The position numbers and the translations under genes were made by a program. A stretch of DNA of 64,000 nucleotides. It comes from Bigelowiella natans CCMP2755 (taxonomy: Eukaryota; Protista; Cercozoa). Positions within the stretch are counted from its first letter, which is position 1; each line of letters begins with the position of its first letter. The stretch spans positions 48,978 through 112,977 of the forward strand of contig ADNK01000156.1 in assembly GCA_000320545.1 (NCBI GenBank). The letters are read 5' to 3'. This document shows positions 6,509 through 61,372 of this stretch, one piece after another. The notes beneath the pieces were generated by a model. That model made no database searches. It was not told where the DNA came from and was given only the letters and a program-made list of their open reading frames with translations.

Positions 6509-7535
6509 AAAGGGGAGAGGTAGCACAGGAGATCAATTTTCATGCTAAGCCTACTATTTAGAGTGATGGAAAGAAGCTCACCTTTTCCTTTTTCAACCTC
6601 CCTGCTTTCTCTGCTGTGAGCCAATCCTATATACTAATATGCTTAAATAGAATGGCGATTAATGTCATGTACGGTACGCTAGCAAATAGCAGCAATTTTG
6701 AATGTACCATGCTAGCATATTCTGTATAGCTACAGTTTGTAACATCTTATTTCAAAAATCTAATTAGCACGGAAGAATTAAGCCACTTGAAGTCACGAAA
6801 AAAATAAAATGAGTGTATGCTATTCACACCTAATGTCACCACTCTTGTAGCTTACATTGAACGCGCACATACTGTGCTATATGGCTTACAAGTACAAGCT
6901 GTGCATCGTAAGTATCTTTGGCTTGCAAATGATATGCAATTGACAAGATGCTAGTAAATCATGTTGACAATTCAGCAATAACAGAGTAGTATACACGCGT
7001 CTATATGGCGCACATGTTTAAACACATGCGTGTGTAGTCGAGGTAGTGCATGACGCCAAACGCAGCACTACACACACACACACGCACACAGAGTATACAG
7101 ATACCATGGCATAGCATATGTCATGTACATAGATGCATGAGCTAATATAAACATATGAGCAAATAATGAAAAACAGAAAATTATTGTAGGCTGTGTTGTA
7201 TCTTAATAAATTCGAGTTGGCATTCTGCGTAATAACCAGATAACAGTCACAACGTATATTCATTACACCTTAGACAAATGTCTTTGGCTTAAAACTAAAA
7301 GATGTATGGGTTAGAATAGAGGATGGTCCAGCATAAAACAATCCCACAAATGTGTACAAAGCATCGCAGAAGAAAGATATCGCACCTAGATGTCAGCTCA
7401 ACATCCTCTTGGTTTCGTGATGATGATAGGATGATGGCGGCAAGCAAAAATATGAAACTTCATAACTAGGTTCTGGGACATGAATAGCTTCCTCGATTTC
7501 ATTTGTTCCCCAGAACACCTTGTCGCCCCTTTCAT

Positions 7536-8234
7536 TTAACGCCGAAGTGACTTCGCTTTCGCTTTTTCCTTCATCGCCTTTTCCTGAGCCTCGAGTGATT
7601 TCTTATATGCATCCTTATGTAATCTGTATCCAAACACTTTCGGGACGTACTTGTCGCTCAGGGACTTTGGTTTCAATTCAGGGTATGTGAGAAAAAACAA
7701 ATGGGGGAATGTTCTTCCGAAGAAAGCCCCATCGATGTGCTCATGCCTCGACTTTTGGGGCTCAAACACATCCTCGCACTTTGGACAATAAAGTTTGACC
7801 GAGTCCTCGTCGAGTTGATCGGAGAGTCCTATCGGCAACACCGCTTGATCCCTACATAGGACATTGGGACAGACTCCAAAGTGTTTCTCTCGATATTTAA
7901 CCAGCATTCTCTGCAGGCCACGACTTGTTATGATGTATCGGGCATGGATCAGCCCGAACAGCGTCTCCGCATCGTTTTCCAGCATCTCCTGCTGGTCATC
8001 TGAGAGCATGTCATCTCTTGATTCTATATCGAGAATGAGGTCAAGAGCATTGTCATAGTAGGCGATCATGGAGTCAAGTCCCGTGAGGTTGAAGGAGTCC
8101 TGGACGTAGGAGTCTTCCACTTCACAGAAGAATTCATTCCCCTTGAGAGAACAGAACCAGGGAATCCAGGAGTACTCTTCATCAGAATGTAGCTCCGAAG
8201 AAGACGCGGAGTCCTTAGCCCTCCTCCCACTCAT
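7536..8234 (-). CDS. CSNK2B: Casein kinase II regulatory subunit beta, single exon
   Basis: 232-aa ORF with SWIPWFCSLKGNEFFCEV, LIHARYI, a zinc finger (CPNVLC...YCPKC) and IDGAFFGRTFPHLF. Confidence 0.97.
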   Translation of the reverse strand: MSGRRAKDSASSSELHSDEEYSWIPWFCSLKGNEFFCEVEDSYVQDSFNLTGLDSMIAYYDNALDLILDIESRDDMLSDDQQEMLENDAETLFGLIHARYIITSRGLQRMLVKYREKHFGVCPNVLCRDQAVLPIGLSDQLDEDSVKLYCPKCEDVFEPQKSRHEHIDGAFFGRTFPHLFFLTYPELKPKSLSDKYVPKVFGYRLHKDAYKKSLEAQEKAMKEKAKAKSLRR

Positions 8235-8550
8235 GATCGGGCTGGAGATCGATAGGAAGCACTTACTAGCCTCACCCTCCCTCGTGTTTTGTGGGGAGGA
8301 GACAAGAAGTCACCCGATATTTTAAATAACATCTCTATTAATTATTCGCATCGCATCTTCATCGCACATTTATTTATTAATTTTTCTTTGACAAAATAAT
8401 ATTTCGTCTGAGAGTCAGCAGCAGCGCTGCCTCAATGCCCCGAATCACGTAAAATAATGTGACCGGTAACGAATCACACTTATTTTGTAATTCTCCGAGA
8501 AATTCTCAGATCCGGGCAACATCTTAAAAAAAAACCGAGGTACGAGGTTG

Positions 8551-11500
8551 ATGGGCACGCAGAATCATCGTGAGGATCTCTCGAAACTGCGACAGGAGGG
8601 TATGATATTGGATCTATTAGGGGTGATATTTTGCCGAATTTAAGCGCTCCCCGAACTTGCTGCCTTGTACAATCAGAGCTACCTCGATCAGATTGGAACA
8701 AGTTAATACTTGCCCCCCCCGATTCCGAAATAAGGTGTACAAAAAAATAATATTATGCAGTAAGTGATGATGCTGTTATTCAAGGCTCTCGTCTGATACA
8801 CAGATGGCTCCGCCATTCGTAAGTGAGGGAGTAAAGACTGTACGAGCATTGGTGGAGCTCATCAAAATGGAGACTACTATGAGAGAAATGTACGTATTTC
8901 CACAGGAAGAACGAGGAAACATGAGAATCCGAAATTTTATGGTTGGAGTAAATCATAATAGCGTCTTTTTCTCAGGAAAAACCAGCAAGTTTCAAATTCT
9001 AGGAATGAATGGGAATCTTCGCTACTAGATGTTCTCTTTGAGAGTGCCTTAATGATAAACGACATGTTTAGTTGCTGGGAATCAAAGATGTATCACTCAG
9101 GTAAAAGGATATTATTGGTGCATGGGCATCAACCTAAACTGTATGCACATCATGTCAGTCGTGCAAAATGTTGAAGCTCGCTGCTGGGCTGTAAGAGAAA
9201 AGCTGACAGCCTTGGAGCGTATATTACCACCCCGCCTATACAGTAAGATGGTAAGTTGTTGTATTGGGTCGTTCTCATTTTAGTTGTCTGACTCAATGTT
9301 CTTACGGCACAGCTTGTTTCTCCAAATAGCAACAAATGGAAGTTTTGCGATGTTGCCCTTACAAGCTATAAGATCATCCTTCAAGTATTCCACTAAGTTT
9401 CATTATGATGGCATTCGGATCCAAATTTGATTCTTATATACATACTTGTGTTTAGGCTCCAAAGAAGCAGACAATCCCTTTATTTGACGAACGGTGTTCA
9501 GATGTGGTTTTGCCACGTTTCCACCGGTAACGATCAACCTCAGACTACTTTGTAGGTTTAACTTTCACGTGGCTGAGAACCGAACTGGCATATGTGTGTT
9601 ATCTGGGAAGAGCCCTGTTCTCTATCTAAGGCCAACAAAATGTCTGAAAAACTTGGATCCCTCTTCCTGGATGGTTTGACGATAGGTCTAACTCTTGTAG
9701 ATATTCAACAAGTGCGGTGGATTCAAGCTCTCACGGGCAACAAGATCATGTAGCACACAAAAATAAAACTAATCAAAGATAGTTAATGTTTGGCAACGCT
9801 GCTTATCATCTCAGCAAGGAAATGAATTCCACCATAGCCAAAATGCCTCTACTTCAGAGATCCAAACTGCTTGAATTTGTCGGAGGTCTTTCAAAATTTT
9901 ATTGTGAAACACAAAATATACCTAGCCTTTGTGTTTTCTTCAGAGGGAAGAAACCTGTTCGAACGTTGCGAGAAATATAACTTTGAAAATGATGATCAGA
10001 AAGGGGACCAACCACTACACCGTACAAAACAAGTGATTAATCAATCGATATCTATTTGAATAACTAATGTTCTGCTTTTATCAGCTCTAAGATCGGAGCA
10101 AATGTTTGACGTTCTAACCTCGTCGAAAAAGGGAGATAATCTTTTAAGTGGAAAGATTTCCGATGTGAGTATGTAAATAAGCAATTCGTTCGTTCTCTGT
10201 ATCATAGAGGACTGCTAACATGCCCGACATTTTGTGCATTGTTTGGCTATTCTATTCTTATTAGAGATACTCCAGAACTATCTCGGAATCTGATTCAACC
10301 CGCCGTATGAGCGGTGTAATCTCAGTCCAGGAAAATGTCACATTAAGTCCTCGGTAAGAGTATACATTTCTTTTTTTCCTTTACAAAATTAATTCGTTTT
10401 TCTCAGTATTGACAGAACCAGAAAGACTGCAAGCCAAGATAATGATGGGCATGATAGCGTTGGTCAAAAACCCAGAAGCGGTGATTTGATTTCCAAACAT
10501 GCCGAAGTTTTTGAGCACATCCCTCCTCTTGGGGATGCAGCTGAACTGGAAGAAGATTTAAAAGCTCTTATTAATCAAGAGGATGATGGCCCAAACGAGT
10601 ACAATTAATTGCATCAACCTACAATGAACACGAAATTCCATTTACGACATAGACATCGATTGTGGAAAATGTTTCAGGCTGCAGAAATCGGATCCATCCT
10701 CTAGTACAAGGCAGTTGTATGTTCTTCCTCCAAAGCAAGCAAAGGCATCCATCAAAATTTTCCATGTTCACACAAGAAAGCGCTCATCATCGCATCCCAT
10801 TCAACCGGTCCGGCTTTTTTGATTTCATGTAGTTTGATAAAATACTGGCAATCTTATTCTGCGCCTTTATTTAGAAGCCTTCTCTTTCAAAGGATAATGC
10901 AGAAAGCGGAGGTTTCAGCAAATTCAAACAAATCTTTCTTGGTATTTGAGTTTTTACTTTTTGAGTAGACCGTCATCTTTACGTCCGTCGACCATGCGAA
11001 ATGCCAAGCTCAAGTAAATCGCATGATAGTCTCCTGAGAGATAGGACACGAAGTTTGGACAATTCAATTCAAAGGAGAGGCGAACTCCGTTTTGGTGGGA
11101 TTGGACGCCGATTCAAACTACTAGGAAGTAGAGGTGATGATGCAGAAATTTACGTCGGGGCAGATGCAACTCAAAGAAGGTACCCCTCGTCATAATTTTA
11201 GGATCAAGATATGAAGATATTAATTTTCATCCCCATTTCATAGGATATGGATACATCGCAACCAGTGTTCGCTACACCACCTCGCTGTAGGCTAAGAAAA
11301 TTTGAATACTACAAGTCCTGAAGACTTTCTGAAGTATTCATGTGTGTGTGTTCGTTAAAGTGTACGAAGGTTGAAGTTCGTCCCTCTAATTTAAAATACT
11401 TCCAAATCAACACAGCAAAGTTAGAGGTCGCTCCAAAGTTTTTTTGGATGTTTTTCGTTTGATCATCAATATTTTAATCCGCAATTATAGCTTGAGCTCA

Positions 11501-14500: not shown

Positions 14501-16040
14501 TCAATGGTGAGAGGGATATTTAAGTTGTTCAAACTAACAATTGACATCAAATTGCACGCAGATACTGGCATCAACGGCATTGATGATTAAAAATCTCGAA
14601 CCTGTCATAAAGAAAGAGAGATTTCTCGCTGTTGAGCAGAAAAAAGGTGCGGGAAAAATTGTCGTAGATCGTCACTTTTGTACTTTGCATTGTTGGTACT
14701 AGTTATTAAGAATGCAGAAAAGCAATAACAATTGAATGACCACAGGCAAAGGAGGTATCTTCGGATGGCTTGGAAGCAGCAACAAACAGCATATTCCCAC
14801 TGCAACAAAAGATATCCTTCATTTTATGGTGAAGATCTTCACACGCTTGAAACTTTATGAAATTTGAGACTAAAGTTAATGTGTTAAACGCAGATCTTGG
14901 TTGGGATGTTTGTATTTGAGTTTCAAGTGAAAAAAGATAATGCTCAGATCCATGCTCAAGAACTTATATTTTATAATGGATATCAAGTATGTTCTTACTT
15001 ATTGTTCAGAGAATACATAATGAATCGCCGCGGGTAGGTTGATTCTGAAGGAAAGTCCATCGATATCGGGCTCATTGAAGCAACTGTGGAGGCATGAATA
15101 TTTTTCAATATCCATAAGATGCACATTTCAGAATAAAAAAATAAATCAGGCTGGAAGGATTCTTAGAATGGATCACAAGACAGAGAAAAAAAATCGGAGA
15201 AAAAGAAAAGGATGGCCTTCTAAATCATTCATCATACAAAATGTATCCTTCGTCATCGAGGTAATAAATAATCTACTGTATTAATTGTAGACTTACATTT
15301 TCGAATATTTTGAATATTAATTTTGACCGATATCATGTAACTGTTGGCTCGTCGTCCAGATATTGACTGAGTTGGCTAACGAACTGAAGAACTTAGCTTT
15401 GCCAGGGGCTCGGAACAAACTTAATGTAAGCAGTAACAGCTTTCATCAGTTGTAATAACTTCCACCTGTGCGGCCAATGTTGAAAAAAAAAATCTACAAT
15501 ATTTACTAGGAGCTACGAGATAAATGGTATGCAAACCCCTTCATCGTCGAATACAGTTCCTTGTTTCGCACAGCCACTCCCCGACACAAGATAAGTTCAC
15601 CGACAAGATTTATTAGGAGATCGAGGCATCACAGCGATCAGCCTTCAGAAACTGAACGAAAAACCTCGAAGCGTTTTTTTCGAGCAAGCAAGCTTAGCAA
15701 AACTCCAAAGCATTCTTCAACGGTAAAGCCATTAGACTGGCGATTTTTACCTAGAAAACAACGCGAACACGTTTGCACAAGCTGTGTTTTGCTCGTTAAT
15801 GAACATGAACGTCAAAATTCTTCTAGCATGGATAGAAAAGAAAATCTATTAGCCGATTTAATCGGACCGAAAGGAGAGGAGATCGCAACAGACTTCATTC
15901 AACTAGAAATTCGAAGTGCATTTGAACGCGATCGATTAAAAAACATGGTATCAAATAAGCTAAAAAATTCATCAACAAGAAATTCTGCTCAATCTAGCCA
16001 ATTTCAACGACGCAGTAGAAGAAGTAGTGTGCCCTGGTAG
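8551..16040 (+). CDS. Large hypothetical protein with dozens of short introns; one segment resembles the neurobeachin/LRBA alpha-solenoid region
   Basis: A chain of GT..AG introns of about 30-75 nt joins mostly open exons, e.g. NQQVSNSRNEWESSLLDVLFES, KTFRFCFASEDDFSSFLRLFDWF, KTSRNRTK|LFLEQYCWQNWLFPL and LVVSILAHVHAYEI. The terminal exon lies in ORF 15561-16040. Not every junction was resolved, so this could be two genes. Confidence 0.55.
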
Positions 16041-16099
16041 CATTTAATTTAGTTTAAATCATACAAGAAAGTGATGTAGGTGATGTTATTTTAACAAAT

Positions 16100-16430
16100 C
16101 GCATTCATCCTGTGAGCATGTAGACACATCAATCAGACATGCTAGCATGCAGCTAAGGTAGCTAGAGATTGTGAAGGAACATCTAGACATCTCTAGCTAG
16201 CTCAGCTAGCCATGCTAGCATGCTAGCATGCGCGCTTGCATCTACTAGATCATTCCGACGCGTCGAACTAGCTAAATTGCTGCTAGCTAGCTAGTCAGTA
16301 CTAGCTAGCTAGAGTAGTCTAGTAGTCGTGGTAGTCTGTAGTGCTAGAGTGTGTTAGCTAGCTAGCTAGTGTGATGTGCATGTGCATGTGTGTGTGTGTG
16401 TGTGTGATGTGTGTGTGCATGCTGCATGTG

Positions 16431-16467
<37 letters not shown>

Positions 16468-16930
16468 AACTAGCTAGCTAGACTACTAGGATGTCGCAGA
16501 TTGATGATCCGTGCTAGCGTGCTGCTAGCTAGCTAGCTAGCTAGCTAGCGTGGATCGGACTCTGAGTCTAGCTAGCTAGTTGTGCTCTAGCTAGCTGGTG
16601 CTGACTAGCTGAGCTAGCTAGCTAGTTAGTGAGGGACACAGTTCTAGAGTCAGATGGCTGATAGCCATGCCAGCATGCTAGCAAGCTAGCTAGCTAGCTA
16701 GAGCATGCTAGCATGCTAGCATGGACAGCTGAACTGTGGCCATCTAGCTGTTCTTGTTTGCTGTGCACAGCAGATGCGCGTCTGACTCAGCTCACATAGT
16801 GCATGCTAGCATCCTACATGGCTTGATGGTGACAGATGTGTGATGTAGATCATGATCTGCTTGTCGAAAAACAATGTCTACATCTCCCTGCAACATCACG
16901 CCACACATTTCTTGATGCTCAACATGTGCT
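16100..16930. repeat. Low-complexity convergent spacer built from (CTAG)n, GCATGC and (TG)n
   Basis: Repeated gctagctagc, catgctagcatg and tgtgcatgtg between the stop at 16040 (+) and the stop at 16987 (-). Confidence 0.85.
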
Positions 16931-16986
16931 TGATTGAGTATAAATATTGCTGTTCATGCAGTCTTCAAACGAATAATTTATGTACA

Positions 16987-19900
16987 TCACACGGATACAA
17001 TGGCTTGTGATTTGTCTTTCTTTCCAAACATTATCTCCTTCACCTCTCGTAACCCGCTCGAGGTTGTAAGTAAGACCATTCCTCCAAAAAATAACATATT
17101 AATCAGAAATACCAGAATACTGGACGCCATTGAGGTGCTGCCATCTGAAAATGAAAGAAACGCTCCCAAATAATAGGTGAACAAGGAAGTCGTTAGTGAT
17201 GCACTCTCGGCCATATTTGCAATTGGGTTACTGTAGACTTTTAAGATGATCTGCGCCTGATGTGAACATGAATAAAATAAGAAAACATTTGTTTGTATTT
17301 GGGCTAATCTTCAAAGTTTCAAACTTACCCCTAGAGATAAAATTACGACCAATACTGCCAAGAGAGCTTGTGAAGTAACGTTTTGTACAAATATCGCAAT
17401 AATTACAATTAGAACCTGTACAGCAAGTTAAAATTCCGCTCTTACTTCATATGGATGTGCTCTAAGTTTATTATAGCAACTTACCTTTCTCAACATTAAT
17501 GTCAGCTCCCAGTAAAAATAATCTTTTTTGAATCCCTTGAAGAATATGTAGATCGGTAATATTTTCAAGGCGTTCTCGGTCTGAAACAATGAGTAGAATC
17601 CCATCAGAACAGCATTAGCGTTGTAACTTTTTGCTACGAGATGGATGTATATGCCTACCTTTGTTTTTGATCGAATTAATCTCCTATTTGTGAAAAGTTC
17701 GTATATGCAGAACAACGGAAAACCGATGACATAGACTATTAGCATCGGTAATCCAAGACCAAAAACATAGGCTCTATGAGGGTTCCCCAGGCATCTAAAA
17801 CATTCATGTGAATCTGAGTTGTGAGTACTTTATTTTAGATGTTATGTTAATTTTGATTTCACCGTTGTGACATGTCAACCAGAAGAACATTCGTGGTCTC
17901 CGATGAACCAAATTGCTCACAATGAAATATCTGCAATTTGGAGTATGTCATATCGAGATGAGAAGCAATTTAACATGTGGGAGCTTACCTCAAACGTTCT
18001 TAACACTAAAGTGGGATATAGAATGAAAAGGAGTATCAGCACCAGTGTATACACTCTTACAGAAGCTTTCTGAAGACAAAAGAGTTTCAACAATTGTGGA
18101 GGAAACAAAGATCAATACAGTAATTACGGTGCTTGCAGAGGGGTTTTGTACGTCGTTCTGACAGGAAATTTTACACAATGAGTAAAATAATACGTTTAGA
18201 GCCCACACTATTGTGAAATGTTTAGTTTTTTACCATTGTTGGAGCATATGTTCTGATGCTTTGGACATCTAAAACCAGAAACTCAGAACTCTTTTCCTTT
18301 TTACATTTTGGTTGTTTCCATCCAATCACCTGTTGCCCCTCGAGATCGCATGGAATCCACAGTCTTTGAATCGTCGACTTTTGGAACATCTTTAAGTTGA
18401 AAGAAAGTGATTCTGTTTGCTCTCATATTTTTGAAGTGCCATTTTAGCTGATATTTACACCTGTTTCTAGCATGGAACGTGCAGGGGTTGCTGCGGATGA
18501 TTCTGCGTGAGTTCCTATCATAGATGAAACACGTGCTGACACGTTTCGGTTGTTACGACGGCGTTGTGGCCGGAAGTCCTTTTGAGAGAGGTTATTTCTT
18601 GATAACTTCATATCTTGTACCGCTTGTGATCCTTGTTCTACTACTGGGCTAGCATCACTACTCGTAGATTTATTCTGTTCCCGACTTTTGATGCAAGCCA
18701 GAATTCCAAACGCACAAGCGATGACAATTATGGGTACGCAAGCCAGGATTATTGTATTAACGTAAAATGGACGTGGAAAAGTAGAAGATGCAATGCAATC
18801 AATTCTCAGCAGATACGTCAGCGATGTTCCAAAGAACTCGTAAGCTGCGAGCATATTAGTCACAAATACTGGCCACTCGTAGTCAAAGGTAAGTGCCAAA
18901 GAGTTTACCTACAAACCGAAAATAAGAAGAAATCATTTTTCTGGATTCAGTCACAGAATATATCAAGCTACCTGAGCTGCTGAAATAAAAATCTTAACCA
19001 ATGTGGAAGTGAGATCTTCATCCTCATCTTCTATTCCAAACTCTACTGTCTTTAAGATGAAGAAACTCAAAGCAAGCGCTATGAATGCTACAATTAACCA
19101 GGCACCAATAAGTTGGAAGATTACAAGCCCTCTCCCACTGCATTGCTCGCAATTGAAACGTCTAGACCTAACCCATCCATCGGAGCAAATGGTGCACAAG
19201 AAGCCTTCATATCCTTCATCGCATCTACTTCGTTCGCCAGGACATGCATTGTTTAGACATTTAAGAGCTTCTGGAGCCAAGTTATCATCAAAGGTAAGCC
19301 AATACCCCTCTGCTGGTTGCACCGAAGCATCTGTAACATTTAGCATAGAGCATTGAAGCCCATCTCTGCAAGGCTGGCACGCGTCATCTTCGCTAGGCAG
19401 AGTAAGTTTTGTACTCAGTGCTGCGCTTGCCGGAATGAGAAGCTCCTCTCTAGCAAAGAAACCGATATCACAGGTGCATCCGGTAAGGTTTGAATTTTCT
19501 GCGACAGAATTTGGTGGACAGGCTAAACACGCCGTACTGTCGTTATTTGGGATTTGATTTGCTCCACAAAAGCTGCATTCATCAGCTCCTCGAGAGGTGG
19601 AAACTGCAGAAGCCTCTGGCCACAATGCACAGTCGATGCACGCGTCTAGCCCCTCAACCGGTGCATAACTCCCGAGAGGACACGGTATGCAAGTAGTTCT
19701 ATTGAATCGAAATTCTCCCGCAGGGCAAGTAATTGTATCGCTAATAACAAAAAGAGAATCTGCACTATCAATCAAGGCAATGTTAGTTGTATTCTCGACT
19801 GTGAAGTCCAGAGCCAGTACTCGAGGGAAAAAAAATCGATCGTTAAGTCTCCCACGATTCCCTATAATTGAAGAAGCGTCTCCAGCAGCAGAAATTAAGC

Positions 19901-26121: not shown

Positions 26122-26645
26122 ATAAGCAGAGAGCATTTTAAGGGTTCATGATGATCAGCAACGTGCATCCTGCTGCGTGAAGTATCTCTGGTGCAGGCGC
26201 TCTACGATAATGGTTTGAGACTTCATCAGTGTGACATGGCCAAATCAGTATCGCGTCGTGCATCAAACGTTAGTAATTTGAACCTAAACATCGCATCTCA
26301 TAGCAGTAACAGTAGTCGATAGTCATAGCTTGTACACGTACTGGCACTTTGTGCATGCATCGCAGCTTGCAGCACGCTAGCACGTCAGGGTGCACATGCA
26401 ACACTTGCATGGGGGCACCTCACGTGTACGTGGTTGATGCCTACGTACGTGCGGTTAGCCGCGTAGCTAGCTAGCTAGTTAGGGCTAGAAGATCGCACCT
26501 CATCATCCAAGCAATAAGCGTTTTGGATGCTTTAAATTAACCACCATGATGCAACGCTGCGGAGCAGTACAATAAATCCTAGATTGCCTTCCTGGCATTC
26601 CTTTTCTCCCACATACCTAGATACATGATGTAGCTTGCATTGCAC

Positions 26646-31331: not shown

Positions 31332-31842
31332 GACGAATCAGATGAGCGATGAAAATACCACCATGTTTATGATGATATAAAATGTCGGAACCTTCGACAA
31401 TTTTTGCAGAACTCAAAGGTTTTTACTTATTTTAGGGATATTGATCGATATGATAGAATCGATATCCATATTGATATGTATCTTTAGAGTTATTACAAGC
31501 AATACTATCCACTGCAATAATGCTGTATGTAGCAGCGTCAGACTGCAAGATGCGCAGCATCATATGGGTGTCCTTAAAAACTAGAAAATTATGAACGTTA
31601 CGCATGCGATCGATTGTGACATATATTCAGCCAGCACTAGAGCATGTAGCCATTCGTAGTGCGCATCTATAGTTCATGCAGAGTTAGAGACACGTTTATA
31701 CAATCCGCGCGGGAGCTGTTCCTCATCAGACATCGAGCTAGCTCACATTGTATCTATTTGCAACATGAGGCGGAGTGGTTCGAAATGAGTCACGTGTAGT
31801 ATACGTAAGCATCGTCACACATTCTAGATCGACGTACACAGC

Positions 31843-31996
31843 GCTACATGAGGATGACCATATTGAACAGATTTAATATGATTGATTACATCTGTCTTAT
31901 ATTCCAGACCGAAACAACATGCATTGCATGTCTATCATCATAAGGATGACCATTATTGAACCAATTAAATTGATTAATTACATCCGTCTTACATAT
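31843..31996. repeat. Dispersed ~60-bp element, copies 2 and 3 in loose tandem
   Basis: ctacatgaggatgaccatattgaacagatttaatatgattgattacatctgtcttat and cataaggatgaccattattgaaccaattaaattgattaattacatccgtcttacat. Confidence 0.8.
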
Positions 31997-32156
31997 CAAA
32001 ACAGCTAGACAGTACAGCGCCCGCGCACGTTCATCATCAGTATTTTGAGTGTGCTGCGATGCGATGCATGGTACATATATGGCCTACTACTATAATGCAC
32101 ATACTGCCTGTAATGCTGCTCCCATAGTGCACACTCTCTGCTATTTGCTTGACTAA

Positions 32157-37588: not shown

Positions 37589-37850
37589 CAGGTTGATTGG
37601 TCAGTTATATTTGAATCCTCTGAGATCCAGGTGTGCTGCATGTATGACCATCGATTTCAATGTGTTCAACATTGCCATGCCCATGTAAACATCAGCGGGG
37701 CAGCAGCATCAGCAACACGCAGTGTTCTTTGCAAAAACCGCAACACATGAGAAAATCCTTTCCGATTCAAGCTCTCGTCAATTATTCATACAATAGATAT
37801 ACGTATATATGATATATGTAATACGTGTAACATATACTTTGTCTATAGTC

Positions 37851-38651
37851 AACATGATGCATGCAACATGCATGACATGTGCTTTGTCTGTAGTTCATGA
37901 TCGAACACTACCAGACTGCTCTTGTGCTCGCTCATTGGCCACGGATTTGAAATTGAATGCAACAGCTGGACTCCCTAGCCATGTGTGCGCGCGCACAAAC
38001 AACACAACGCACATGCTGTGTGTAGCTATCTAGCCATGCAATCATTTTCTGCAGCGGCGGCAGGCTGCGGAAGAGCTCTAGAGCTGGAGAGTTTTGTGGA
38101 ATTGCACGTGGCACTCTTGTACAACTCTAGCTTGCTAGCGCTCACCACTGAACAACGAGTGGCCCAACAATGCAGTGCTGTGCATTCCACGCTAGCACTG
38201 TCCATCAAAACTCGGTTCCATCACCTTGCAATTTTTCAGCTTGCAATTTTCGCAACTCCCCAGCTAGCCAGAGAGCTGAAATTACCAGGAAGTTTGCACC
38301 AATCAAAACAATTCGCACAACGTGACAATGAAAAGTGAAGAGCCAATGTCTTCGAGAACAAGGAACCACAGGCTTTGGGAGAGCAGTTTCCAATCGAACG
38401 CGAAGAAAAAACACTTCCGCCACCTTCCGTGCCAGCGTGGAGTGTTTTCGTGCAAGTGTTCTTCCCGTGTTGTCGACCCATTGCACCAATCTGACACCAG
38501 AAACCATTCCATGAATCCATCGTGACGATCTGTGCCATTCCCAATTTGAACACGGATGCGTGAGCCAGTCTTTCCCTCAATCCTTCGCGGAAAGCTGCCA
38601 TTCTGAGCATCCAAAGCATCTCGAGGAGAATCTCGGGAAATCAGGAAATCC
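37851..38651. other. TpA-depleted intergenic tract
   Basis: About 13 TA in 800 bp by hand count, 7 of them in CTAG; no TA at all between 38285 and 38651. Confidence 0.85.
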
Positions 38652-38750
38652 TATTCGGACACCTTTGGACGCGTCGGACAAAAAGACCATCTCCTACCTA
38701 GGAAATCTCGGGAAATCCTCAGGAAATCCTAGAAATCTCGGGGAACATCT
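38616..38750. promoter_or_regulatory. Cluster of GGAAATCYYMGG / ATCTCGGGA motifs upstream of the molybdate transporter
   Basis: gaatctcgggaaatcaggaaatccta...ggaaatctcgggaaatcctcaggaaatcctagaaatctcggga. Related words occur in other upstream regions (2831, 8489, 24611, 30541, 33879, 55250). Function is inferred from position only. Confidence 0.55.
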
Positions 38751-39025: not shown

Positions 39026-41755
39026 ATGTTGGCCTCCTTGTCACGACCGATTTCCTCATTAACTGATCGGATTCGGAACATCTGCTCCCAGTGGTCCTGG
39101 TCGGAGATTTCTGGGGGCCTGGGGGATCTTGGAACTCTGCTTCCTTTTCTCGTCGCGCTTGCGAAGGAAGGATACATCAGCATTATCCCGGTAACGCCCA
39201 AGTTAAAGCATGTTCGCCATTGTTCTCTGAGCCATCAGCTTTCTGGGTCCGGGGCTAAAATGATCAACATCTTGTCCGAACTTCACAATGTATGATGACG
39301 TTAGGCTCTGTTCTGGGCAGGATTGTTTAACATCACTTCCGCGGTATGGATGAAGTATTTAGAGACATTGCAACCAACAACGATAGTTATCGGGTAGATG
39401 GGGGAAGCATTATCGAGAAGATCTTCTTTGATGGAGGGTTAGCGTTTGAGTAGCAGTTGCGCCAAGTATCCGATCTAGGAGGTCACATGTCTCCTGGTGC
39501 TTTTCAACCCACAAGACTCGCCATTTCCTTTATGCAAGAGAGAAAGATTTCGGCGTTTACGTTACAAGAGTTTATATCTGCTTATTGAGCCCTAAGCTAA
39601 GCTATATGGTTTCTACTCGAATAATCTCAGATTCACTGGAATCTACCAATGCCTGTGCAACCGATGAAAGCTATTGCGACAGTAGCTCTGACGACTAACT
39701 TCCTCAACAGTAACTCCATTATTTGCGCCGGGATTTTGACTGCAGGAACAGTGATGTTGCTTGGAATAACACGGTCCATTGACTTGCTACACAAGATCAC
39801 ACCAATGGCGGTGGTGTACGGGATTCAGGTGGGAACCGGGGCATGTGAATTTCCAAATTTGTGTTGAGGCAACAGAGGGGGGGGGGCGGGGGGAGGCATA
39901 CCTATCATAAGATAGCTTTCTTTTTACGCATCAATATCGATATTGACTTGTGTCAACTCTCGGAACCACCGTGGTATTGCTGTCCGGCGCTGTTACTAGG
40001 TCGGCTTGGGCATTCGTATGATAACACACGCATTTCGGCTAGCATCCAGCACCGGCCACTGGTTTGCATTTGATTCCCGCTTTACTGCACTAGTGGCTGC
40101 GGTATTCACGTTGAACTTTCGCCACAATCGTCATCTTCCTGTCGCTCTCATAGTATTTGCGATCGGGGTTCTAATTGCGATCGGTATCCTATGCTCACGC
40201 GGTGGGGGTGGGGAATGGCCGCATGATGGTGCCGCCCCCCTTTCGTGGAAGTTGTCAAATCTTTCCGCCGCCGATTGGCAAGAAGGTTGTGAGAAGAATA
40301 TGTCGTAGTAGCGACCTTTCTTTTGTCAGGAGTAGGCCGGTGACCATCGGCTTTTGTTGTCCATTTTGCTGATGTGAGTCATTAGTCCGCTCACGTTGTG
40401 ATTGTTGTTTGCTAGGGTTCATTCACGGAGCAATCCCCCAGATTCCACTCACAACGCTTAACTCCGTCATCGCGGTCTCAAAGCTAGCACACGATCTTTA
40501 CCCCCAGAAACGGCGAGACATCACGCGCCCAGGAGTGGCTTCGGCTGTCGGTGTGATGAATGTTATCGGGTACGATCGTGACTTTCTCCAAAAATAAAGA
40601 AACAAACGAACGATTTTTTAAAAAAAATAGAAAATTATTCCTGCTTTTGAAGTTCCCTCCACGGATCAACACGGGAAGTGGATGCAGGGGAGTGAGAGAG
40701 GGGCGGATGGCTGACAGAGAGGTAGAAGCAGCCCACATGGAAACAGCATCCCTGCCTTTGTATGCTTGAAAGGTGCGCCTTTGGCGCCATGCCGATGTGC
40801 CATGGTGCAGGCGGCCTTGCCGCACAGCATGCCTTCGGCGCTCGTGGAGGACTGAGCATAACGTTTCTCGGGATTTGCAAGATGATGCTAGCTTTGGCGT
40901 TTGGTGGAAGGTAGACTCGTGTGATATTCTCATCCTGCCTCAATAGCACTGCGTAGAAGAGATGATGATGATGACGACGACCGACCACCATCTGCATTTG
41001 TACACTCGCCGTACTCATCAACTGAGAACAGTGCCAAGTGGACGATTGCTTGTACTGATAATCTGCTAAATGCTTCTCCTGTCATTGTATGTGTGGGGGG
41101 GGGGGGGGGGGGGGGATATTTTGTATCATCATCATCATTCAGGGCTGTGCTGGATCTTCTGAATGCATTCCCCGACTCTGTGCTCGGTGCACTACTTGGA
41201 GTCTCCGGACTCGAGCTTGCTGTTAGTGGGGTCAATCGCATGTGCGAGAACAACATGCGGAAGAGGGAACCGCACGAGACTTCTCTGCGCACGGATTGCT
41301 TAATCTGTATTGCCACTGCTGGAGGGGCGGTCGCCACGGGGAGCACAGCTATCGGATGCATCTCAGGGTTGCTAATGGCAATCGCAGAGTCTCGGTGGAT
41401 GAAGCATTTCGTTAGTAGCTTTGGGAACAACTCCAGGCCAGAGGAGGGGGGGGAGCAAAAGGATGCTCTTTCAGCCGATTCCACGCTCGGTGGTTTGGAG
41501 ATGAAGGCGCGGAAAAGCAGTGACGGCGGGGCCTCTTTATCGGGCGATGCCCCAAATCTAGGGGCGCACCGTGCCGACGATTTGGAAATAGCGGAGGAAA
41601 AAAATCAAAACGAAATCGGTAGCGCTCTAGGCGCTGTCGAAGAAAACAAGGTGGAGGAGCAGAAGGCGGTCGATTCAATAGTTGAAAATGATGAACGAGA
41701 AATTGGGGCGGGCATGCTGCCAATAGAAGACTTACCGGAAGCAGAGACTGCGTAG
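39026..41755 (+). CDS. MOT1: Molybdate transporter MOT1 family (sulfate transporter 5-like), multi-exon
   Basis: SEISGGLGDLGTLLP, PMPVQPMKAIATVA, GAIPQIPLTTLNSVIAV, MCHGAGGLAAQHAFGARGG and FPDSVLGALLGVSGLELA are all hallmark MOT1 motifs. Confidence 0.92.
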
Positions 41756-52859: not shown

Positions 52860-53740
52860 TTCATGTCGCATGTATGCTGTCAAACAATCTCAGATCAGTC
52901 TTCTCATCGATCTCCTCCGTGTGAACGAAGATGTTTCCGCGCCGCAGGTCACTCTAACACAGAAAGGCCTTCGAGCAGGAGTGCGTGGGGAAAACGTGTT
53001 GGATTATAGAGGGACTTGAATTACATGCAATGTTCTTCTCAGGGCCGATCGGCGTTGAAAAAAATCTAAAGCAGCTGCAGTTACGGGCCTCAAGCTAAGA
53101 ATGCTTCCGTAATTGCAGAACAGCATCAGCGTGTACTTTGAGAATAAAATCAAGGCAGCGGGAAACTTATACTTCCACTTAAGTCCAAGAGGAAATAGGT
53201 TTTGTCGAAGAAAATGGCACAAAGTAGAGACTTCATCTTCAATAGCATGAAAAGGAAAGAAGGGAAACTCAGTGACCAACTTGCATTAATCAATGATCAC
53301 ATCTGCAATCAGCTTGAGATCAAGAGATGGACCAGGATGAAAAGTATAGGTAAGTTCGTGATGAGACTGTTGAGCAGATCATTCAGTGACTGTGAAATGC
53401 GTAGGTGTATTCATGACAGTCATGATGTGCAACGGAATTGCAGTAAAAGCGATGTTGATATTCTGGAAATACTGGGTATGTGATTTACGAACTTTCATAT
53501 TTCAACTTCCATTTTCCTTACCAGCATTTATCTATTCCTTAGGTTTTTTGCACAATATCTGGATCTATTGCAACTCTGTGCACATGTTGGTTGATATTTT
53601 CTGTTTTTTCGGGCGACTGCAAAGAGGCGTTTTTTGCGCCTGAGATTTACACAGGACGTTGTAACCACTGGTTAGAAAAGTATGGAGTTCATTTTGATCC
53701 TGCTAGCAAGAGACTGATATTGGACGATAAATATAGATGA
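52860..53740 (+). CDS. Small hypothetical membrane protein
   Basis: Possible exons VLSKKMAQSRDFIFNSMKRKEGKLSDQL..., VFMTVMMCNGIAVKAMLIFWKYW and FCTISGSIATLCTCWLIFSVF...KYR*. The 5' structure is unresolved. Confidence 0.35.
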
Positions 53741-53869
53741 CGCAGAATACCATGTTGGTTTGGTGACACGTACCAGTGGTGTTGATTGATTTTTTGCGGA
53801 GACTTGTCATCAACCTCATCCATTAATGCCGTGTTCCAATGCATACACATGTTACTGGTTCTTTATTCA

Positions 53870-55230
53870 TCGCATGCATACATTTGTTTTTGGTGCACGA
53901 ATGCAGGTGCATGTCGCTACAAGTCGTGTTTGTCATGCTAGCATGACTGCAATTGCACATCACGGCTCATTCATCGTGTGTCAGATCTAGAGATGCAAAT
54001 GTCACGAACACTTCAGCAATTTCCCTCTTTCCTTCGCAACAAGATGAGTACATCTGCTAGTGCATGTTTGTGTAGGTCTAGGCGCTTACCAACAAACGTT
54101 TGAATGTGCGCACATGCTAGCATGCTAGCATGGCTCACAATTGCAGAATTTCGATGCGTTCAATGCATGCGTGTGTGTGTTGCGTGTCATGCGGCTGTGC
54201 ACGCGACACGGCGCACAATCCGCACAATGCTTGCGATTTTCAGAGGTAAATGCTAACAATGCGTGCTGTGCATCATGGCATGTTGGAGTGCTGTGAATGT
54301 GCTAACGATCTAGACAATTTTGTTAGCAGTGCGTGAACAATCGAACGCATTCATGTCGAGTTTGTTGTTCACGCCGCGCCTAGCCATGCTTGTCATGCAT
54401 GCACCACCTGTTTTCAGCACAGACACAACAACGTTCGTGTTGACCCCGCTAGCCCGTCTAGCCGTGCATTCCAGCATCTGCTAGATCTGGCATGTCATGC
54501 AACACACGCCACGTGTGAAGTTCGCATCATGCACACCATCACGTAATGTGAGCGCTGCACACATGTCTTGTGCGTGTCTGGCGTCTCTTGATTCTCTGAA
54601 ATGAGCGCCTGAAATCACGTCACGGCTACGTCTAGACGTGCGCATCATTCCAGAATTGGGAGCACGTCCAGCTAGCCAGGTGCGTGTTGATTGCGTTGAT
54701 TTGCAGCTGCTGGCACAGCTGGAGCGACGCACGCTTTGCTCGCATCAAGCTTGCTCAAGTGCAGATCCAGGACGTGAACGATGGGAGATCACGTACCGAT
54801 CGCTGTCATGATCGCACTCAACGTTCAACTTCGATTCGCATCGATGCAGTCGCCTGCTAGCCTGGTCAATTCGTGGCACACTTGCACAACCACCACGAGA
54901 CAAACGTGCCGAACACACGAACGTCGACAGGTGCGGCCGCTCGATCGTCAAGCCGAAATCATCCCGAAGGCCATTCGCAAGCTGAACGAATGATGGAACG
55001 AATGAAGTTGTTTTTGTTTTTGGTGCTTGCATGATTCGAAAGGATCGTGGGACTGTGGGACGTGCCAACTTGTCCACGCCCTCACACTCTCCAACAAAAA
55101 AAGAAACAGATTTGCCAATCGACCACATTTCCAAATTGTTGCATGACACTCGCAAAGTGCGAAACGCAGTGTCCTCGAGCCGAAAACATGCAACGAGGGC
55201 CACGAGCTGTGACAGCCCGCTAGCCCGGGC
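53870..55230. other. TpA-depleted intergenic tract, possibly a decayed repeat or gene
   Basis: About 26 TA in 1350 bp by hand count, about 15 of them in CTAG; no TA between 54860 and 55220. Confidence 0.85.
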
Positions 55231-60131: not shown

Positions 60132-61372
60132 CCTCTTGCATCGAACAACTTCCCTGTCAACTTGGCGTAGATAATGGATAAAATACTAGATGATTTAAGC
60201 AACGTTTCTAATCATCTCTTTACTATACGACACTAAAAGGAAAATTTTCTCTGGAGTGTGCCTACTACCAGCATATCCTTTCATAGATTATACTTAATAG
60301 ACTTTCATAGCATCGGACTCACCTTGATGTGTCGTACTATGTAATAATGCATCAGTTGGAATCCAAGTGCAAAATCTAGTGGTACGCATACTTGCCAAAA
60401 ATTATTGCATGCAGTTGTTATTCCCCGCATGCTATCGCAACCTAACCCGTGCGACCAATTACTAGATTGATAAGCCTCAATGCCCATTCGGCGCCCACAT
60501 CGCTGGACGTTAGGACGTGCGCCGCATTTGAGCTAGATAACTGAAAACTACGCTTGTTTTTTGAGTACATGCATGACGCCTCTATGAATATACTGGTTGT
60601 ATATACGAATGATGGTATGCGCGAATAGATGGTAGAAATGATGCACACACACATGCACAATGTGCGAGCGCATGCTAGCATGTCCACGCGTGCATGTCTA
60701 GATGTCAGGCACAGCATGTGCACATCTAGACATGATAATAGACAAAGTAATCATGTCCAGCACGCTGTCTAGACGTGTATGTCTAGATTTACGCGTGGAA
60801 TTCGTACATCTATGTGCATTTTGCATGCATGTGTGCACAGGGCGTGTGAATGCACACAGCTAGACAGGTGCAGATGAGTGACCATCATCAACAAATCTAG
60901 AAATGTTGAAAAGTCGCGAGTGACAAAGACTGTTTTCAAAGAAATTTGATAGGCATAGCTCCCTCTTCGTCCCCTTTGTGGGTTCGCAGCATCCCCTACC
61001 ATTTGCTTGGGCTAAGGGAGGAGAGACCGCTCGCCTGCCTCTCGACCGGAACGAGCACCGATTTCGGATGCTGTGGCGCTGGAGCAGAACGGTACGCACT
61101 TGTCGCTGATAGGCCTTGTCGCACGAAATAAGTGGCAAGCATCTGTTGCTGATTTACCATGTCGCACAATGAAAATGGAAGGCAAACAGCAACAAGCAGA
61201 CGAGCGATCAGAACTACATCAAAACCCTGATTCGGTGAGACCAACCGCTACCCAACCCGACGCTTAGAGCCGGGGCTCTCTTTACTACGAGTTGGGCCCC
61301 AGGATTGATTCTCGGAGCCTCCCAATGGCACCGTTATCGTTATACCCTGATGCGCATCACGGGCTTCACTGA

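Follow-up and report, generated by a model that had tools for sequence, protein, structure and literature searches.

A spacer of 801 bp in Bigelowiella natans CCMP2755 (tract 1, positions 37851-38651 of the 64-kb stretch of DNA that was analysed, hereafter the window) has lost most of its TA dinucleotides. We consider it probable that tract 1 is the mutational footprint of a localised TpA to CpA/TpG hypermutation, the process that has been measured in this species, and not a functional element. In this process, the T or the A of a TpA would be changed to C or G on either strand, giving CpA or TpG, and the conversion would have run near to completion across a sharply bounded domain of 0.8 kb between two genes. 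The CTAG tetranucleotides surviving in the tract likely have two sources, namely a mutability of TA that is roughly two-fold lower on each strand if the T follows a C, and an independent insertion-like supply, recognisable by the arrangement XXXX-CTAG-XXXX.

Tract 1 contains 13 TA, where 51 were predicted from the base composition (observed/expected, o/e, of 0.25) and about 38 would be present at the o/e of the whole window (0.74). All 13 lie in the left part of the tract (37852-38284; TA o/e 0.47, CA+TG rho 1.72): seven in CTAG, four in CTA or TAG and two in other contexts (GTAC and TTAC). The right part is a TA-free core of 367 bp (38285-38651) that has no CTAG either and in which 23 TA were expected by composition and about 17 at the window o/e. 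The resulting gap of 369 bp (38284-38651) is the longest without TA in the 64 kb, and the second-longest, of 363 bp (54858-55221), is the core of another erased tract (tract 2, 53870-55230; TA o/e 0.33, CA+TG rho 1.65). CTAG makes up 54% of all NTAN in tract 1 and 15 of 27 in tract 2, compared to 6% in the window. A preliminary description of this DNA had counted 13 TA in about 800 bp, with the same split of contexts, and had set the expectation for the TA-free stretch at about 20; the recount gave identical counts, and that expectation was fair. The (TA)n tracts that it reported as surviving across the window are present as well.

The loss of TA in tract 1 is accompanied by raised CA (o/e 1.44) and TG (o/e 1.63), compared to 1.19 and 1.22 in the window; in tract 2, CA and TG reach 1.65 and 1.66. 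Decay of 5-methylcytosine (CpG to TpG/CpA) was considered as a source of these dinucleotides and is excluded, as had been argued before, because CA and TG are raised in the tracts without a matching depletion of CpG (o/e 0.75 in tract 1, 0.92 in its core and 1.09 in tract 2, compared to 0.85 in the window). The GC content of the core, 0.49, arithmetically equals the average of 0.447 plus about 17 A:T to G:C changes in 367 bp. The sum of CA and TG is only mildly raised in the core (rho 1.29), about 12 short of the prediction of a simple conversion model (about 1.5 SD), and this counts against conversion.

The left edge of tract 1 is abrupt, in agreement with the earlier reading, with the last unconverted TA at 37846 and the first converted position at 37853. 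This edge lies in a tandem duplicate of about 45 bp. Copy A (37807-37851) is situated outside the tract in TA-rich DNA and was used as the unconverted reference, while copy B (37852-37901) is erased DNA and makes up the initial 50 bp of the tract. The copies were aligned in a transition-tolerant manner (37807-37858 against 37852-37901; 50 aligned positions), and all 13 differences between them are transitions, with no transversions. Nine of the ten TA of copy A (37807-37858) are converted in copy B, four to CA and five to TG, and these four T>C and five A>G changes lie interspersed over 50 bp, i.e. they affect both strands. The single TA kept in copy B is in a TAG context (ATAG>GTAG). The score of the alignment was 72.5, compared to a maximum of 41 among 500 mononucleotide shuffles, and has to be read with the partly purine-pyrimidine alternating composition of both copies, which inflates transition-only similarity. 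The homology is nevertheless real, because the copies share departures from this alternation as well as a CTTTGTCT block. Judging from these bases, both copies must once have been near-identical, and the conversion would have hit the inner copy only. Since the inner copy is converted relative to the outer one, the change would have taken place in situ, after the duplication. Moreover, because the edge splits one tandem duplicate of which the inner copy alone is converted, the domain was probably set by position (chromatin or transcription state) and not by sequence.

TpA-specific hypermutation of integrated viral DNA has been described in B. natans (Mettrop et al. 2026, bioRxiv 10.64898/2026.01.13.699255), and the preliminary description, which knew of no such report, is superseded in this respect. 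In 15 mutation-accumulation lines, 231 of the 302 nuclear single-nucleotide mutations were found in two viral inserts, a giant-virus insert of 186 kb and a virophage insert of 25 kb. All but one of these (230 of 231) were A>G or T>C and were placed on TpA by the authors. The hypermutation was confined to some lines, the mutations arose in place, in a single-copy and transcriptionally silent insert during clonal growth, and TpA mutations also occurred on scaffolds without viral ORFs. When Table S2 of the preprint was retallied by hand, 226 mutations were found in NTA/TAN contexts; four T>C are listed there as ATG or ATT, which are not TpA. Several of the de novo insertions in this table end in ACA. 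On scaffold 10, the table lists 17 T>C at CTA and three A>G at TAG (binomial p = 0.003), an asymmetry where a strand-symmetric process is expected to give equal numbers of both. Flanking context, CTAG and the sharpness of edges are not discussed in the preprint. As a possible chemistry its authors suggest deamination of adenine in DNA by the ADAT2-like candidate Bn78255 (Mettrop et al. 2026).

[quoted passage not shown] 2026). Both tract 1 (0.25; 1.52) and tract 2 (0.33; 1.65) reach these thresholds; the core of tract 1 taken alone has a rho TpA of 0 and a rho CpA+TpG of 1.29. On a fixed 1-kb grid, 54001-55000 was the only interval that passed both thresholds and no cluster of three intervals was obtained, because both tracts are too short. 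In overall composition, the window (GC 44.7%, TpA frequency 5.7%) is close to the nuclear genome (44.87% and 6.0%; Mettrop et al. 2026). Within the window itself, TA is lost and CA+TG gained, the changes on both strands are interleaved, the edge is sharp and the paralogous copies differ by TA in one and CA or TG in the other; the direction from TA to CA/TG we take from the published experiment. The directional transition process that had been proposed for the tract is borne out by the paralogous pair, and the published de novo spectrum matches it.

The 226 published TpA mutations also allowed a test of flanking context. Tallied by hand with the two strands collapsed, and with the availability of NTA in this window, not in the viral insert, as denominator, they gave relative rates of 1.06 with an A 5' of the mutated T (76 mutations), 1.33 with a T (71 mutations), 1.05 with a G (56 mutations) and 0.48 with a C (23 mutations; binomial p = 2e-5), in a three-base context that gives no view of whether CTAG itself is fully refractory. 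It had been supposed that the process is blocked when a C precedes the T. The rate at such sites is indeed about two-fold lower, but the 23 mutations with a 5' C speak against a full block.

Besides tracts 1 and 2, the window contains a partly erased spacer laden with CTAG (16038-16989; o/e of non-CTAG TA 0.46, CA+TG rho 1.58) and a small patch in which half of the TA are in CTAG (60640-60920; CA+TG rho 1.99). When the two tracts were compared by blastn to each other and to the rest of the window, only matches at the level of microsatellites were found, and the tracts are homologous neither to each other nor to other DNA of the window. Transition-tolerant Smith-Waterman alignment of the tracts to the window gave long noisy alignments at background level, the scoring being too permissive beyond the local duplicate. 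We surveyed the 23 non-coding segments of at least 350 bp without any 90-codon ORF. The signature of erasure was present in two of them (53481-54747, which overlaps tract 2, and 16038-16989), and the remaining 21 had a TA o/e of 0.57-1.19 and no signature. Erasure is thus patchy within the window. In addition, the flanks just beyond a transcript mapped at 7126-8313 are not erased (TA o/e 1.03 and 0.84). This transcript is an intronless CK2-beta contig from a JGI metatranscriptome, colinear with 7126-8313 on the - strand at 99.75% identity; it differs from the window at three of 1188 positions (7704, 7417 and 7128), which suggests that it came from a different strain of the same species. The best CK2-beta homologue with an organism name is from the chlorarachniophyte Amorphochlora amoebiformis, and still closer matches have 76-91% identity. 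A PAN-domain ORF that was likewise used to identify the species gave no match. The preliminary description had the process acting on untranscribed DNA in general and only outside genes. Neither part agrees with the unerased segments and transcript flanks, nor with the published hypermutable region, where the mutation rates of exons and of intergenic DNA are about equal (Table S1 in Mettrop et al. 2026).

CTAG is enriched three- to five-fold in the tracts. Against a background of about 2.4 per kb, computed outside the tracts and the arrays near 16 kb, tract 1 harbours seven CTAG where 1.9 were expected (p = 0.0035) and tract 2 harbours 15 where 3.2 were expected (p = 2e-6). The survival of CTAG had been attributed to sparing of TA preceded by C. 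The lowered rate works in this direction, but sparing alone cannot explain an excess over background, because even full protection never lifts a count above its starting value. The abundance of CTAG is therefore beyond what the hypermutation itself explains.

Many of these CTAG are located between identical 4-mers, such as CCAG-CTAG-CCAG, CATG-CTAG-CATG and CCCG-CTAG-CCCG. This arrangement was found for 12 of the 22 CTAG of both tracts, compared to a chance rate of 2.5% there, and for 33 of the 183 non-array CTAG of the window (18%), compared to 0.9% over all 256 tetramers (p = 3e-32); the runners-up after CTAG were its frame-shifted forms GCTA and TAGC. The length of the flank is specific, as 18% was reached with 4 bp and only background with 3, 6, 7 or 8 bp. 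There are four cases with 5-bp flanks, including AAATC-CTAG-AAATC at 38724-38737, among the short repeats that border tract 1 on the right. Tract 1 itself carries the insertion-like signature in AGCT-CTAG-AGCT (38074-38085) and in CCAG-CTAG-CCAG (38260-38271), the latter with an identical 12-mer in tract 2 (54668-54679). Ten XXXX-CTAG-XXXX are present in tract 2, ten in the spacer at 16038-16989 and five in the patch at 60640-60920. Across the window, the sites form clusters at 16142-16716, 26377-26617, 31581-32005, 38078-38264, 42238, 53938-55220 and 60675-60897, and four of these seven have a TA-depleted, CA+TG-enriched setting. Such a local setting was found for 45% of the XXXX-CTAG-XXXX sites, compared to 4.6% of random positions.

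In the tracts, two candidate converted sites stand against 12 intact ones: AGAG-CTGG-AGAG, and CGTG-CCAG-CGTG in the TA-free core (38428-38439), which would have arisen by CTAG>CCAG and is a weak, single case. Because of this ratio, the CTAG of the tracts either mutate far less readily than other TA or arose after the erasure. The spacer at 16038-16989 has 51 CTAG in about 1 kb, including (CTAG)n arrays. Arrays of (CTAG)n/(AGCT)n mixed with CATG-CTAG units are seen at 16197-16720 and 26460-26478, and repeated XXXX-CTAG-XXXX events at CTAG targets could give rise to such arrays.

The XXXX-CTAG-XXXX arrangement looks like a 4-bp target duplication with a 4-bp footprint, or like the product of an 8-bp insertion process. 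We know of no transposon superfamily that leaves CTAG. A search of the window for intact elements with CT...AG ends, a 4-bp duplication and inverted termini returned nothing but (CTAG)n noise and two candidates that did not convince. The literature on CTAG footprints and on B. natans transposons yielded nothing relevant, and no description of the XXXX-CTAG-XXXX signature was found. None of the 21 published de novo indels is a CTAG-type insertion (Mettrop et al. 2026). A speculative scenario, to which we give a minor chance, is that a mobile element that has CT...AG ends and makes a 4-bp target duplication lands repeatedly in spacers, triggers spreading TpA hypermutation and excises, leaving CTAG. 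If this were true, the sparing of CTAG would largely reflect age and not enzyme specificity, and the erased spacers would be former insertion sites. The CTAG insertions may also be a repair by-product of the hypermutation machinery. The signature is a separate lead and may point to a mobile element or a repair pathway that has yet to be characterised.

We also searched the content of the tracts. Ten ORFs from both tracts gave nothing above noise in Pfam, and the longest ORF of the core of tract 1 (127 aa) had no match by phmmer in a set of 1.84 billion representative proteins; wherever TAA and TAG cannot occur, open frames of 100-150 codons are to be expected anyway. No terminal inverted repeats, long terminal repeats or target duplications were found around the tracts, and a search of the tracts for RNA families returned a single sub-threshold chance match. 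These ORF, repeat and homology searches thus detected no viral or transposon origin for tract 1, and heavy decay could hide one. Exact 25-/26-mers of the tract core and of the first exon of the gene downstream both gave no match in JGI metagenome contigs, which makes the negative result for the tract uninformative.

Judged from the ORFs alone, the genes flanking tract 1 would be tandemly oriented on the + strand. Downstream lies a multi-exon gene (39027-41755, + strand) with a likely start codon at 39027, about 375 bp past the end of the tract. It contains GGLGDLGTLLPF and HGAGGLAAQHAFGARGG, recognised by eye, which we take to be motifs of the MOT2-type molybdate transporter family. A cluster of short repeats on the + strand (38629-38747), situated at the right edge of tract 1, contains AATCTCGGGAAATC and TCAGGAAATCCTA and a local GGAAATC repeat. 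GGAAATC is found elsewhere in the window at 2831/2874 and once at 10154, and is absent at the end of tract 2. A 43-bp tandem pair near 2.85 kb (2830-2915) carries AGGAAATCCTAGGAAATGG and contains GGAAATC. As a general promoter mark this motif was rejected, since it is restricted to two loci and not enriched (seven found in the window, 4.6 expected); the promoter motif cluster that had been placed at the end of the tract corresponds to these short repeats, whose role as a promoter is putative. In addition, the TA-free core has five CCAAT, all on the + strand (38299, 38343, 38390, 38486 and 38541), where about 0.7 were expected. They may act as CCAAT boxes for the transporter-like gene, or may have come about when CTAAT was converted to CCAAT, and they leave room for a regulatory role.

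Several other explanations were weighed against the hypermutation described for B. natans. The same outcome could be reached by a different chemistry, in which thymine at TpA is modified (5hmU/base-J type) and this base or its repair gives T>C. TpA is self-complementary, so that neither the sequence nor the published mutations can tell which base is attacked, and deamination has its sole support in a candidate enzyme found by homology (Mettrop et al. 2026). Nothing in our analysis supports a thymine-modifying enzyme or modified bases. To our knowledge, T>C via 5hmU is not established as a major pathway either, and we regard this chemistry as unlikely. Selection against TA, with the tract acting on the transporter-like gene downstream as its promoter or enhancer, would suit the short distance to the likely start codon, the same-strand CCAAT of the core and the short-repeat cluster at the right edge. 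Against it, two unrelated sequences share the loss of TA, the paralogous copy lost TA by transitions only, the DNA beside the mapped transcript is not poor in TA, most of the other non-coding segments look normal, and CCAAT can itself come from CTAAT by T>C. Moreover, we know of no regulatory code that excludes TA over 369 bp, and selection is in our view very improbable.

The enrichment of transposon and viral domains in the published TpA-poor clusters would fit foreign or transposon DNA that was already TA-poor on arrival, without conversion in place. The converted inner copy of the duplicate contradicts this, as the change would then have followed the duplication in place, and so does the lack, in our searches, of terminal repeats, a target-site duplication around the whole tract, a coding remnant or a homologue; we rate such an origin marginally below selection. 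Least probable of all, and hardly credible, is an ADAR-like A-to-I hyperediting of RNA that became fixed in the genome through reverse transcription or gene conversion. The preference of ADARs for a 5' U fits TpA, as discussed by Mettrop et al. (2026), but the mutations of the preprint occurred in situ, within a silent insert present in one copy. The T>C and A>G changes interleaved within 50 bp, with CA and TG both raised, are also unlike the clusters on a single strand that editing would leave. ADARs usually prefer a 3' G. The depletion of TAG in the published table is opposite to this preference.

Taking TpA to CpA/TpG hypermutation as the cause of tract 1, its tempo can be estimated from the published counts (210 TpA mutations at about 5,976 callable TA over 3,132 generations). 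These values would correspond to a loss, during periods of activity, of about 1.1e-5 per TA and generation, i.e. a half-life of about 6e4 generations, so that near-complete erasure would need activity for the order of 3e5 generations, which is evolutionarily short.

A TpA-specific, regionally switched A:T to G:C mutator in a eukaryote is remarkable and has already been described (Mettrop et al. 2026); tract 1 fits as a small new example of it. What is new are sub-kilobase scars in spacers beside normal host genes, too small for the published scan to resolve and with no recognisable foreign DNA. The base-pair-sharp edge that splits a tandem duplicate is also new and argues for positional or epigenetic over sequence-based targeting. 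In addition, the flanking context was checked quantitatively, with the result that a 5' C halves mutability without blocking it, and the CTAG insertion-like signature that is co-localised with erased DNA is an unexplained extra to the described process.

Tract 1 resembles the hypermutated viral inserts of B. natans in its TpA target, its transitions on both strands and the patchy distribution, and it shares with their signature the depleted TpA, the raised CpA+TpG and the raised GC. However, the published cases are inserts of 186 and 25 kb and clusters of at least 3 kb, whereas tract 1 measures 0.8 kb and has ordinary host genes on both sides. In the preprint, the process is linked to viral and transposon DNA; no foreign content was detected in tract 1. 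With fungal RIP, it has in common a dinucleotide-specific, regional and transition-only hypermutation that leaves a compositional scar and may serve genome defence. RIP itself was rejected as explanation: it changes CpA to TpA and raises AT, whereas TpA is lost here and not gained, and it hits both copies of a duplication, whereas the conversion in tract 1 has touched a single copy of a very short duplicate. RIP also needs duplicated DNA and a sexual cycle, in contrast to the published B. natans mutations, which arose in a single-copy region during clonal growth. Antiviral editing of the ADAR/ADAT and APOBEC type is similar in that bases are deaminated in foreign nucleic acid, with the 5' U preference of ADARs. 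These enzymes act on RNA or single-stranded DNA, whereas the change in B. natans is heritable, chromosomal and on both strands, and its enzyme is putative. The XXXX-CTAG-XXXX sites, finally, are reminiscent of the excision footprints of Tc1/mariner-type transposons, with a target duplication, 4 bp of element ends and the duplication again, tightly of 4 bp and occasionally of 5 bp; they differ from such footprints in that no intact element accompanies them in the window.
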